Assembly: GCA_025201805.1 (NCBI GenBank)
Contig: MU619265.1
Location: 215,466 to 279,465 of the forward strand
Length of the DNA stretch: 64,000 nucleotides
Direction: 5' to 3'
Source: Parasitella parasitica NRRL 2501
Taxonomy: Eukaryota; Fungi; Mucoromycota
Made by a program: the position numbers and the translations under genes. Under the pieces are notes generated by a model, which was not told the DNA's origin, searched no databases, and worked only from the letters and a program-made list of their open reading frames with translations. Below are positions 251 to 7,097 of this stretch, one piece after another (the first letter of the stretch is position 1; the number at the start of each line of letters is the position of its first letter).

Positions 251-1976
251 CATTCAGACAACAAACACAAGCGCAACAACCATCTTCAAGTCAAGCTCAA
301 GACGTGCACAATGAAGAAATTCATCTAAATGATATCAAACGCATGAAATCAACTCAAATGAACCGTAAATTCACCAATTCACATCGCGTTGGTAAACGCT
401 CTACATTGATGGAAACACCTAGTCCAACTACAGCATTTGTTACCAACAAAACTGATGAAAACAACAGTATTCATAGCAGTCGACCCCACAGTTTAACATC
501 TTCAATGAAGCGAACCTCGCTGAATGAATTAGAAGGGGATTTATCTCAGATGAGTGTGAGTAGTGCAACTCGAATATACACGCACAAATATACCAAATCT
601 GTACCCAAAGCCAAGAGCTTTTATTTTGCAGAATTGGGTGCATTACAGCATTTCATGTTGAAGCATATCGCCGTTCTCTATTTGGAAGAAATCTTGCACG
701 ATCATTTTACCCTGGAAGAGCTCGCTGATTTGATTGATGATAGAAAGAATTCAACATTGTGGGGCAAATTCGTCACTAGCTTAAAGGCTGGTGGCAATAA
801 AAAAGTGCCGAGGGCGAAAGGTAATTATTACTTACTAGCTAGTTTTGAAGAGTAATTAACTGAATGATTTAATAGAGGGAACATTTGGTGTGTCAATTGA
901 TATTTTAGTCGAAAAGAATGGAATTGAATCAAGTCTTGGTGTCGGCCCGACCCGAATTATCAAAATCCCTTCATTTATCGATGACAGCATTTCAGCCATG
1001 AAACAAATGGATATGTCTGTAGAAGGCATCTTTCGAAAAAATGGTAATATTCGTCGATTGAAAGAATTGAGTGAAGAGATTGATAAGAACCCCAATTCCG
1101 TGCAATTTTTAAACGAAACACCCATTCAAGTGGCTGCAATAATCAAAAAATTCTTGAGAGAGCTGCCTGATCCGTTATTAACCTTCAAGTTACATCGTTT
1201 ATTTATCACTGCTCAAAGTAAGTACTTTGTTTGGAGCTTATTCTGAATAAGTTATGCTAATTTAAAGTTTAGAGTTAGAATCAGAACTAGACCGAAAGAG
1301 AGTAACACACTTAGCTTGTTGTCTCTTGCCTAAAACAAATCGTGACACAATGGAAGTATTATTCACATTTATGAAATGGGTATCTCAATTTGCTGATGAT
1401 ACTGATGGCGGGGGTAGTAAAATGGATGTAGTAAATCTAGCTACAGTTATTGCTCCTAATATCTTGTACTCCAAAAGCAAGGATCCTATCAAAGATGAAT
1501 CATTTCATGCTATTGAATCTGTCACTGTTATGATACAAAACGCAGAGGAATTTGCTACGGTTCCTGAAGATTTCATTCCATTATTGCAAAATTTATCGTA
1601 TGAACAAGGTGATATGGAATTGAATGTAAGACACATTTTGAAGAAGTGTGAGGTGGTGATGAAAATGAGAAGGTCCAGATCTGCAGGAGGACCTCTTCCG
1701 CCTCAGTTACCTAGACAACACTCATCACCAGCTGCAGTTACCACTAGTAATATAGATAATCCAATCTATTCATCAGGTGAACAGCAGCAATCGCCAGAAG
1801 CATCATCAGCGCAGCAAAACTATTACTTGTCTTCATCACCCCAAAGTATAGTGTTGGAAGACCCAAATGATAGTCTTGCCCCTCCTACAATACCTCCCAT
1901 CATCCGTTCTCAATCATCCACTCAGCTGAATGGCAATGAAGGAGGGAATCTTTTGATAAAAGAACTCATTCAATAA
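1..1976 (+). CDS. Rho GTPase-activating protein, Lrg1/Rga1-like (5'-partial, multi-exon)
   Basis: RhoGAP motifs MDMSVEGIFRKNGN, AAIIKKFLRELPDPLLT and KMDVVNLATVIAPNIL. The pre-GAP segment YFAELGALQHFMLKHIAVL and GVGPTRIIKIPSFIDD resembles fungal Lrg1/Rga1. GT-AG introns at about 821-875 and 1218-1272; stop at 1974-1976. Confidence 0.88.
118..250 (+). repeat. CAG/CAA polyglutamine tract in RhoGAP
   Basis: Interrupted (CAG/CAA)n run encoding about 40 Gln in ORF 19..855. Confidence 0.95.
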
Positions 1977-2089
1977 TTTATCTTTCTTTCTATTATAAAT
2001 ATTCCCCATTTTCTCTCTACTTGATTGATATGCAGACGACACTAAGCCCTCGCATTTTAATCCTATCTAATTATTAAAATACTTGTAGG

Positions 2090-2665
2090 CTCATTCTCAT
2101 CACAGAGCGTTTTGGATAATTTGGAATGATGTGGGATATGGTTGACCATATAATCAAGTTTGGTAATTTCGGTTGATTCACTTATAACGGTGGTTCGTGA
2201 TGAGATATGAAGTAGGCGTTCAGAAGATCAAGAACTTTTTTTATAACACATTTCATTCAAATTTCAGATGTTGAACTAAAAAGGTATGTGCTATATCAAA
2301 GTTATCTCATAGACCTTTTATGCAACGTCCCACTCGTAGTATTGGTATCTGAGGTAAATCATTGATAATCCTGATTTACATTCATAGTAAAACCCTTTGT
2401 TAGTGGATCTATAGTAATTCTTTGACGGATTTGTTTTATTTGACTTTAGACATAACGCTATAGTGTCTTGAGTGGGTCATGTAATAATTTTTACTAACAA
2501 GAGTGGTATACAAGTCATTTCAAATCTCAGGTACAATACCGATCGATTAGAATAATGTACCACTCTTTGCAATGAAAAAAAAAGCTTACCAAACCTAAAA
2601 GATATAACTAATTCTGACCTCACAGAATTTTATATATAACTTTATCCCTTGGTAAATCTTTTTTA
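2090..2665. ncRNA. Candidate structured ncRNA downstream of Fanzor (omega-RNA candidate; G.U pairs favour + strand)
   Basis: Many inverted repeats: 2095-2103/2197-2205, 2267-2273/2323-2329, 2279-2285/2313-2319, 2329-2335/2470-2476, 2339-2353/2526-2539, AAGAGTGGTA/TACCACTCTT at about 2499-2568, TTACCAA/TTGGTAA at about 2586-2654. T-runs at 2236-2242 and 2659-2664. No ORF. Confidence 0.5.
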
Positions 2666-3052
2666 TGCGGAAGAATCCCCTTCAAATTATGCTCAGAGTC
2701 AAAACAAACAACACCTACATCTCAGACCACAAACAACTACATAATGCAGGCAATATGTTTATTTGAAAGTAAGGACTGTGATTCGGTGGAGTAATGCTTT
2801 CAAATGACAAGAAATTCACAGCGCAGGAAACCATAATACTGATAGAGTAAATGAACTATGAGACCAAGCGAAAGCCACAATATTAAGACCGTTAATAAAA
2901 AATAGCGCAAAGAGTAATTGCATACATACCAACAAAAGAGATGGTTATGTTGTAAAAAAATTATATAGAAGAAAAAGAGAATGAGTTTCTGATAGTAATA
3001 AGCTTTATAGAGTTTCTGAATTTACCGAATATAGCCCTCATCGAGGGCAGGC

Positions 3053-6000
3053 CTATATTTTTTTCTTGTTAAGAAAGACATCAGCAAGTTTGTTGAAATT
3101 GTCAGTTCTTGAAAAACTGGTTTTTGCGTCGAAGGATGGGAATGTCACGCCGAAGACGAGTTGGGCCACACCTGCCAAACCGATCACAAGAGCACTGAGA
3201 GTGTCTCTGTTGTGAGTGATGTGGGCAGACTTGACAGAGATACAGTCTTTATTGACACAAATGAATGCACCTTTGACTGTCTTGACTTGGGTTTGGTCGT
3301 TGTCTCGTACGACACGTAACGGGTGAGAGAGCTTACGAAAGCAGTATGGGCAAGTCTGGGATGTATTATGCTCGTTTGTGTAAAGTACCGAAGAATACAG
3401 GCTATTCTTTTTGGGCTTCCAGTGACCACCATAACGCAAAAAGCCTTTCGTTCGTGAACCAATACCAAGCCCGCGATCACCTACAAACATAACAAGGCGC
3501 TTAAGCCTTTTGTCTTCTTCGACGATGCAATGATTTCGTTCAGCGGAGCATAATTTATCAATGAATTTTCTTTTCCGCAACTCGTATTGTCTCTTCTTTT
3601 TTGCAAGGTGAGCAGAGTTGTAGAAGCTTCGGACCTCCTCAGCACGACTAAACTGTTTGTTCTCCCAGACAAGTAATTCATCAATCGTGTTGACGTCGGA
3701 TAGGCTCACACTGCTCAAGTCGGCTTCAACATCAAACATTCGACTACTGCTTTTAAATTTCAATTTCCTTGTATGGGCCTCTAGGGCACGAGCTCCACTC
3801 CCATAGCTGATATCTGTGCCATGAACTCCGAATGACTTTGGCATTTTGAGGAAGGCAGGTACTTGATTTGCATGTAAGCTTATTGATCCTGAAGATAGAG
3901 TTAGACAAAAAAAAATAGGCGCATCTACTTGAAAATTACCTGTAGCAGGAGATGCTTGTTGCCTATGCAAATTCAAGTGATACAGAAACCTATCCATAGT
4001 AAATACCACTGTTTCTGTCATCGTTACGAGGCCATTATCTGTGCCTGAAAATCGAAGATTTCCTGAATTGAGGAGGTCATCATCAAGCTTGAAGGATGTA
4101 ACATTGCCGAGACACTTGAAATTTGTCTGGCTGATAATATGCTCTTCTTGATCTTGATCTTTTGTAGCAGAGTCAAAACATTCTTGATACATTCGTTGTC
4201 TAAAATTTGCTAGCCTCTCTTTACAACCTAACAATCTTTGATTGATTTCATCCCTTGTGTTTTTCAAATGTTGAATTTGCGTATACAAAGATGTCTGATT
4301 TTTNNNNNNNNNNNNNNNNNNNNNNNNNNNNNNNNNNNNNNNNNNNNNNNNNNNNNNNNNNNNNNNNNNNNNNNNNNNNNNNNNNNNNNNNNNNNNNNNN
4401 NNNNNNNNNNNNNNNNNNNNNNNNNNNNNNNNNNNNNNNNNNNNNNNNNNNNNNNNNNNNNNNNNNNNNNNNNNNNNNNNNNNNNNNNNNNNNNNNNNNN
4501 NNNNNNNNNNNNNNNNNNNNNNNNNNNNNNNNNNNNNNNNNNNNNNNNNNNNNNNNNNNNNNNNNNNNNNNNNNNNNNNNNNNNNNNNNNNNNNNNNNNN
4601 NNNNNNNNNNNNNNNNNNNNNNNNNNNNNNNNNNNNNNNNNNNNNNNNNNNNNNNNNNNNNNNNNNNNNNNNNNNNNNNNNNNNNNNNNNNNNNNNNNNN
4701 NNNNNNNNNNNNNNNNNNNNNNNNNNNNNNNNNNNNNNNNNNNNNNNNNNNNNNNNNNNNNNNNNNNNNNNNNGGAGAGTCAAGCTTCAGAGCCAATAGA
4801 GAAGTTGGTTTTACAATAGGCACAATTTTCCTGACCCATTTAGAGTATCCGGTACTTTTAAGGAGATTATTGGCCATCAGAAAAAAAGGAAGTTGACGAG
4901 CGACAACAAAAGATTTGCTTCTCTGAGGTATGAAAGGCGATACAAAATTGATGATAATTAAGCAAACTCTGACTTCGTTATTATCGATATCGGGTAAAGA
5001 AGCTTTCAATCTGTCTTCACATTCAGTTTCAAGTGTTTTTTCGAGGATGATTCGTCGCATTGTTGTTTTTAGAGTATTAATACGACGGCTTGGTAGGTCG
5101 GTGGTTGTTTGATTCCCTGAATCTTCCTCATTTCGCAGTTCTTGTGCAGCAGTCGGGTTGGCGTCAGCTTGTAGTTCTAATTCCGTCTCCTGGTCATCTT
5201 TGATTGCAGTTGCTGAATGAATTTCACGAGCTTGTTTCTAAATTATGTCATCAGTTATAAATGCATATATCTACTATGTATATATATCTTCATTGATAAA
5301 TTTACCTCCGTGTACAAAACATGTTCATACGTATTAATTCTTTCGCCGCATCGAGTCGCTTTTTTAAACCATTTTATCTGCATTGGGGCGATCATTCATT
5401 GCTTTTATCTGATTAGATTCTTCCTGGCTTCGTTCTTTCTTAAACAATCGCTTTCTTGCATGGTAAGACAATCCAATAAGTAATATATCGTCAACGGGAA
5501 TAGAGCTTGCGTATTGTTTGACATTACGAGCATTTTGACGGTCCCTTTGACGATCTAAATAATCTCGTTTTTTAGCCTCACGCAAGGGAGCTAAATGAAC
5601 ACGAAGGAGAGCAAGCAGCAAATGATTAAGCAGGGAATAGAACGCCTTGTTGTTGGACCACATGTTTAGGAAATAAGTTTTGTATTTCGCCAAAGCCATC
5701 TTCATGATAAAGGGATCTGCTTCGATATCTGATTTATTTGTGATAGGAAGTGCCGATATTATAGTTTTTTCGATTCGACGGTTGTCCTTTGTACCTTCTC
5801 TAATACCAAGTTTACCAAAATATTCAGAATGAATACGATCCAAGTGGCTGTTATTAAAAAGTTTATCAAATTCTTGAGTGAAGATTTCATTCGATAGACA
5901 ATCGCCTGGTAACGGTGGCGGCATTTGTCCAAACCGCGGATCGAAATGATATCCTGCTGGTAAAACATAGGCAGGATCTGGGCCAGTTTTGGGTTCAAGA

Positions 6001-6758
6001 GCTACACGATCATTTTCATGCAAGACAAAGGATGACGTTTCAAATAGCAAGACGATTTTCAATATCTGTAAGCTGTATCTAATAATGTAGTCTGTAGCAT
6101 GTGTCGTAGCTTGCGATATTCTATTAAAAAATTCTTGTCTAATATCTTGTGGTAAATCTTCACGGACAATAGATTCTAAGCTGCAACTGATTGTTCTGAC
6201 AAATTCTTTATCATCAACATCTTCGAAAGTAGAAACACTACCAGTTGATTGCTGTTCTGGAGTAAGAGAAGCAGTCGAAGTTTCATTTCCTTTGATTTTT
6301 TCTTTGATTTCTTCAGTAAGAGTAACAAAGTTTTTGTTTATGAAATCTTTCCACAGTTGGATGCCCTTTTTGCCCTTACGAGAAAGTCTGTTTATGTATT
6401 TTTCAATTTCCGTTGTTTGTATTGCTTGACCATCTATAGTGTTCCGTTTTTCAGCCTCTGTCACTGTTCCTTTCGGTAAAGCCTTCATCGATATAAGCAT
6501 ATCCTTCAAAGGTGATACATCATCTTGACCTGATTTGCAGTATGCGTGGATTTGAAACGAGATTCTTCTTCTAAACTCATTTGCATCACGTGAGCCATTC
6601 CCTCGACTGCGTTTGGCTGCCGCTTGACTAGATTCTGCTACCACTTCTGTTTCCTCAATGGCTCTTTTTTTGCCCATTGATTTCCAGCGTGGAGGAGTGT
6701 TTATTTGTGTTACGCCAGGAATATAAGTTAATCGTTGTTTCTTTTTAGTTCTAGCCAT
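3053..6758 (-). CDS. Fanzor1 / TnpB-like RNA-guided RuvC endonuclease (2 exons, one apparent +1 frameshift, internal N-gap)
   Basis: RuvC-I FSGTDNG (D at 4037-4039), VGDRGLGIGSR, RuvC-II NEHNTSQT (E at 3371-3373), Zn finger CPYC...CVNKDC, RuvC-III NRD (D at 3203-3205). Intron 5305-5238 (GTAAAT...TTTAG) joins in frame to the ORF 4248..5060 frame. An extra A at about 5372-5375 truncates ORF 5364..6758. Confidence 0.85.
4304..4773. other. Assembly gap (N run) inside Fanzor ORF
   Basis: N run of 470 nt. Confidence 0.99.
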
Positions 6759-6840
6759 TTTTCATCTGCAAAGGTTATAAAAAAATGAAAAGAGAAAGAA
6801 AAATGGATTGCAGAATCTTCATTTTTATAATGAGAACAAA

Positions 6841-6990
6841 AGGGTCTGATGCATATGTTTCCTGATTTATCTCTGTGTGAGATAAACAATATCGTTCTTC
6901 AATTAGAGGAACAATACGTATTTATCAGTTAATTCCTCGGTGAGGTTTTTATGTCGTAGTATTTTTTGTTTATATGGAGACCTTGGTCCC
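6841..6990 (+). ncRNA. Candidate ~150-nt multibranch structured RNA upstream of and divergent from Fanzor
   Basis: Closing stems AGGGTCT 6841-6847/AGACCTT 6978-6984 and CATATG 6852-6857/TATATG 6971-6976. Internal CTGA 6862-6865/TCAG 6925-6928. Hairpins TTTATCTC 6866-6873/GAGATAAA 6879-6886, GTTCTTC 6894-6900/GAGGAAC 6906-6912 and CCTC 6935-6938/GAGG 6942-6945. Confidence 0.45.
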
Positions 6991-7097
6991 GATTTTATTT
7001 GAGTGAAATTTAATGCATAATAGCAAAACGCAACCTTTTTTTTTATTTTTTTTTAAAGATCAAGTGTATACATGCGGATTATTTTGTTTTTCTTCAA

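Follow-up and report, generated by a model that had tools for sequence, protein, structure and literature searches.

In the described Fanzor and TnpB systems, transcription of the conserved transposon end yields the omega-RNA scaffold, with only 14–15 variable nucleotides lying beyond that end (Saito et al. 2023, PMC10432273), and known scaffolds measure 75–150 nt (Xu et al. 2024, PMC11423790). In the 64-kb stretch of DNA analysed here (the window), a paired block of ~400 nt at 2260–2665 resembles these RNAs in being non-coding, structured and located 3′ of a Fanzor gene. The original prediction took it for either an unusually large omega-RNA scaffold or a convergently transcribed RNA in a non-canonical Fanzor layout. 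We find that the block is an ordinary, known kind of feature and not a Fanzor guide-RNA scaffold. It is very probably part of the 3′ untranslated region (3′ UTR, at least 860 nt) of the neighbouring RhoGAP-domain gene, or read-through from it, with its pairing a legacy of repeats.

Another described system to which the locus can be compared is the eukaryotic mRNA 3′ UTR with MITE remnants and a 3′ UTR intron. As in such regions, the block is contiguous with upstream coding exons on the same strand, has no ORF, carries a decayed dispersed short repeat and is not conserved in relatives. It differs in that its transcript extends at least 30 nt into the Fanzor element and is known from contigs without ends, and in a fold excess larger than in 67 local controls.

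Extent of the Fanzor element and position of the block

The block is framed by the following features.

256–1976, + strand: last three coding exons of the RhoGAP-domain gene (mismatch-free spliced RNA contig, PF00620 homologues, translation)
1977–2835, + strand: non-coding unique stretch from the RhoGAP stop to the Fanzor element end, transcribed and containing the paired block
2836–3052, − strand: conserved non-coding tail from the Fanzor stop to the element end, 91–97% identical in 10 copies
2836–7018, − strand: multi-copy Fanzor/TnpB-like element (ends from genome copies, TNB domain, intron spliced in RNA)

The RhoGAP-domain gene lies on the + strand and its stop codon ends at 1976. PF00620 RhoGAP homologues of its last exon reach 84% identity in Mucoromycota, Cunninghamella being the only named close source among them, and a long CAG/CAA (poly-glutamine) tract occupies 106–255 of the gene. 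The stretch at 1977–2835 is single copy in the genome except for a repeat at 2290–2456. On the − strand, the spliced Fanzor gene spans ~3053–6758, with its stop at 3053 and bases 4300–4780 reading N. The next host gene past the element is encoded on the − strand, which places the element between two convergent host genes.

The Fanzor-like protein gave a weak Pfam match to the TNB domain (PF07282, E 0.0015), and its neighbours in the Atlas (score 0.98) come from Mucoromycota and giant viruses and are Cas12f1-like TNB proteins. For its C-terminal piece, a comparison with PDB sequences at E up to 10 turned up nothing relevant; the Fanzor identity therefore rests on the Pfam match and the Atlas neighbours. 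A 51-nt intron at 3888–3938 (− strand; CT..AC on the + strand) is spliced in RNA contigs. The contig over 3611–4200 differs from the window at four bases and by a 1-nt gap, and may thus derive from another Fanzor copy. At least one Fanzor copy is expressed and processed.

Searching the genome with 2000–3060 returned 10 other copies (91–97% identity), which match only from 2835/2836 inward. Every aligned copy begins with ATACTGATAGAGTAAATGA... at the junction, and the copies show no relationship in the 50 nt outside it. The other end of the element lies at about 7018. With the element thus delimited to 2836–7018, the block falls in unique flank, 171–576 nt outside the element end and 388–793 nt past the Fanzor stop codon. 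A search with 2230–2700 matched only MITE-like copies at unrelated loci, and none of its matches lay next to another Fanzor copy.

Set against the published systems, the oversized scaffold of the original prediction fails on position, conservation, strand and size. Omega-RNA scaffolds lie inside the conserved transposon end, whereas the block (2260–2665) is outside an element that ends at 2836. Beyond the boundary, the 10 other copies all lack related sequence, which speaks against any link to Fanzor. The strand is opposite to that of the nuclease gene, as the intron at 2354–2403 reports + strand RNA and the fold favours the + strand. Finally, the block is ~400 nt long rather than 75–150 nt, and begins at least 171 nt beyond the point where a 14–15-nt guide would end. 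Following the published placement (PMC10432273), the real omega-RNA scaffold would be expected in the tail at 2836–3052 (− strand), and its guide would be read downward starting at 2835. The segment containing this candidate tail (2816–3075, − strand) had no fold excess (z −0.43).

A false lead is thereby removed, as no oversized or antisense guide RNA has to be invoked for this Fanzor copy. The rule that follows for scans of Fanzor and TnpB loci is to set the element boundary from other copies first, because an omega-RNA scaffold must lie inside the element. Small positive results are the element coordinates (2836–7018), the RNA-supported Fanzor splicing and a repeat-derived 3′ UTR intron.

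RNA across the block and its intron

RNA evidence came from de Bruijn contigs of the single public run covering the locus. The RNA label of this run was guessed, and we count it as RNA because its contigs carry four spliced joints. The contigs are unstranded and have neither ends nor levels, and one contig across two features is not proof of one molecule. A 2484-nt contig aligned with 0 mismatches to 256–818, 874–1217, 1273–2351 and 2402–2865, giving three GT..AG joints on the + strand. Two of these are RhoGAP coding introns (819–873 and 1218–1272); the third is inside the block. Introns in the window are short and of the GT..AG type. The contig ends at 2865, 30 nt into the Fanzor repeat, because a de Bruijn contig there meets multi-copy sequence. 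Two features of the block are needed here.

2290–2456, + strand: decayed copy, with an internal deletion, of a dispersed MITE-like repeat of ~270 bp (copies in genome, alignment)
2354–2403, + strand: 50-nt GT..AG intron (contig joint 2351>2402, cut +2; sequence checked)

RNA of the block is continuous with the RhoGAP coding exons, GT..AG polarity places it on their strand, and it lacks coding capacity (longest ATG ORF in spliced 1977–2900, 33 aa), all of which fits an mRNA 3′ UTR. The contig covers the entire block; + strand transcription is shown only around the intron at 2354–2403, and RNA over 2404–2865 could partly be − strand Fanzor read-out. Given + strand transcription at the intron and a contig contiguous with RhoGAP, the block is best read as RhoGAP 3′ UTR or read-through. 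The predicted convergent RNA is thus borne out in strand and direction at the intron. The non-canonical Fanzor layout attached to it is not, since an RNA contiguous with the RhoGAP mRNA makes this an ordinary convergent-gene arrangement.

Two other processing signals suggested by the sequence were discarded. An intron guessed to run from GTATGT at 2285 to TACTAAC..AG at ~2493 is unused in the RNA contig, the real intron being that at 2354–2403. A Pol III transcript ending at the T6 run (2659–2664) was likewise rejected, because the RNA reads through T6.

The intron lies wholly within the MITE-like copy. The genome search matched 2286–2460 to at least 11 unrelated loci at 69–87% identity to the window, and the copies are alike over about 250–270 bp. 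Relative to full-length copies in the alignment, the window copy is short of about 100 internal nucleotides. A full-length copy used as query gave 147 first-look candidate matches in the genome, 40 of them scored; many of the 147 match only the 3′ ~90 nt of the repeat. In full-length copies the family termini are GTTATATCAA... and ...TTGACATAAC, whose inverted-repeat match covers 9/10 positions. No consistent target-site duplication was found in the alignment of copies. The repeat is short and non-coding, with many dispersed copies, and it shares with MITEs a size of ~270 bp, many diverged copies, short inverted termini and an internal hairpin. It departs from them in the ~100 nt missing from the window copy and in the far greater abundance of the family's 3′ ~90 nt, an abundance that would fit the end of a larger element. 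At the start of contig G000:C88, a MITE-like fragment (135–244) directly adjoins a Fanzor left-end fragment (247–371), which looks like a transposon-rich junk region and not a linked pair.

The stems GTAAATCA/TGATTTAC and AGACAT/GTGTCT belong to the MITE-like copy or its edge. The former is contained in the intron and hence spliced out. Both splice sites are conserved in most copies (at the 5′ site, GAG before the cut and GTAAATCA after it; at the 3′ site, TTTGTTA(TA)G), which makes the family a possible carrier of latent splice sites. This recalls introner-like elements, in which splice sites likewise derive from repeat-family sequence conserved among copies. Here, by contrast, an internal 50 nt and not the whole insertion is spliced, one copy has been seen to do so, and it lies in a UTR and not in a coding region.

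Pairing in the block and its origin

The dense pairing described in the original prediction is real. Direct reading confirmed the coordinates of GATGTTG (2267–2273)/CAACGTC (2323–2329), of CCCACTC (2329–2335)/GAGTGGG (2470–2476) and of the T6 run at 2659–2664. The remaining stems were found at the approximate places given for them, and 8/8 are present in the + strand minimum-free-energy structure. Its claim that wobble pairs favour the + strand also holds, on two G.U pairs only (in GAUGUUG/CAACGUC and AGACAU/GUGUCU).

Compared with shuffled sequences, the + strand of the block stands out (−92.3 kcal/mol, z −3.68; 0/100 shuffles as good) and the − strand does not (−83.4 kcal/mol, z −1.78; 3/100 as good), so that the expected fold excess was found on one of the two strands and the asymmetry between them is real. 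As controls we used 67 other 406-nt segments, each taken on one strand, of the same 64-kb window (mostly coding DNA, 20 shuffles each), which had a mean z of +0.27, an s.d. of 1.16 and a minimum of −2.89. Re-scored with 20 shuffles like the controls, the block gave z −3.34 (+) and −1.47 (−). No segment sampled is as extreme as its + strand, which lies beyond every control. The excess persists when the intron is removed (z −3.4 for the spliced block).

The pairing can be assigned to four parts of the block.

2267–2329, + strand: local hairpin, GAUGUUG/CAACGUC enclosing AAAAGGU/ACCUUUU (z −3.18 on +, −0.72 on −)
2329–2476: long-range CCCACTC/GAGTGGG domain (z −1.9 on +, −1.6 on −)
2486–2580, + strand: inverted-repeat hairpin with a AAGAGUGGUA/UACCACUCUU core, inverted repeat I2 (z −3.91 on +, −2.66 on −)
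2583–2662, + strand: inverted-repeat hairpin, UUACCAA/UUGGUAA enclosing AAUUCUG/CAGAAUU (z −4.71 on +, −3.20 on −)

The excess comes mostly from the three local hairpins. In the first, the 3′ half overlaps the 5′ end of the MITE-like copy. For the other two, 0/200 shuffles folded as well; the genome search found no further copy of the hairpin at 2486–2580, and the T6 run comes after that at 2583–2662.

RhoGAP orthologues in related Mucorales have nucleotide identities of 83% (L027–L032), 75% (L025/L026) and 73% (L033), and align until about 2016, plus one patch at 2047–2103. From 2104 to 2835 nothing matches at the orthologous loci of the three relatives, where the downstream gene differs and gene order is not kept. 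Equivalent 406-nt stretches downstream of RhoGAP in two relatives showed no unusual fold (z +0.36 and +1.22). Searched against Rfam at E up to 10, 1800–3400 returned noise only (best E 0.57), the best matches falling far below the gathering threshold (17 bits vs 84; 13.5 vs 100), and an ARAGORN scan gave no tRNA. A host non-coding RNA recognisable by Rfam or synteny, the outcome against which the original prediction had set its own reading, is thus not what the block is either: it belongs to no Rfam family, and the three relatives share nothing at these loci beyond about 2103.

From these observations we propose how the block probably arose. The RhoGAP 3′ UTR or its read-through would cross AT-rich non-coding DNA in which two more local inverted repeats accompany the decayed MITE-like copy. 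Rather than a selected RNA structure, the pairing would then be a side effect of transposon debris and local inverted duplications: a DNA-level, lineage-specific legacy of repeats. The Fanzor element would have landed 171 nt beyond the block, between the two convergent host genes, and the block would play no part in Fanzor guide-RNA function.

Alternative readings and wider possibilities

The most substantial rival accepts the host transcript and gives the fold a function independent of Fanzor. Either the whole block or the hairpins at 2486–2580 and 2583–2662 would be a structured element, such as a small-RNA hairpin precursor in a mucoralean fungus proficient in RNAi, or a regulatory structure of the 3′ UTR. 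The block is transcribed, its z of −3.7 is beyond all 67 local controls, and the two 3′ hairpins (z −3.9 and −4.7, 0/200 shuffles as good) may have been selected for structure. We consider this distinctly unlikely, as no Rfam family matches, the regions downstream of the relatives' orthologues show neither homology nor fold excess, and the hairpins are inverted repeats at the DNA level that fold on the − strand too (z −2.7 and −3.2). A separate + strand lncRNA with its own promoter and one intron, merely overlapping the end of the RhoGAP mRNA, would fit the missing ORF. The contigs cannot tell single from overlapping transcripts, and a 3′ UTR of 860 nt that contains an intron is long by the standards of a compact fungal genome. 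Yet 1977–2260 gave no positive sign of a promoter or poly(A) site, and this reading is highly improbable.

An RNA that serves the Fanzor element itself, as an oversized scaffold or a dedicated antisense partner, is barely credible. The block is close to the Fanzor 3′ end and RNA contigs do cross the boundary at 2836. That boundary, seen in 10 copies, nevertheless leaves the block outside the element; the block is absent beside every other copy and is transcribed and spliced on the strand opposite to Fanzor. Moreover, it is ~3–5 times any published omega-RNA length and lies beyond the 14–15-nt guide extension (PMC10432273, PMC11423790). RhoGAP 3′ UTR or read-through with repeat-derived pairing thus remains the reading we prefer.

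Two wider possibilities go beyond this assignment and are, taken together, unlikely. The latent splice sites of the MITE-like family may make short introns in transcribed regions; if so, this would be intron creation by an introner-like process in a mucoralean fungus. In addition, antisense RNA from RhoGAP may pair with omega-RNA or Fanzor transcripts and contribute to control of the element by RNAi. At this locus, RNA of the host gene appears to extend in antisense as far as the omega-RNA end of the Fanzor element.

Other copies of the element provided further observations. RNA contigs cross the element end both at 2836 and at L002:1501, and a 255-nt loose end matches the L002 flank; at L002, + strand ORFs likewise converge on the Fanzor element end. 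Copies C46 and C21 have internal ORF deletions. A mini-copy at G000:C2:241027–241358 is internally deleted, with the right-end tail joined to part of the left-end region and the gene absent. Three copies (L034, L037 and L038) share the sequence CCGTATAACCACTCGAAAAAATTAAAT... just outside the left end, beyond the equivalent of 7018, and are either nested in another repeat or represent a longer variant of the Fanzor element.
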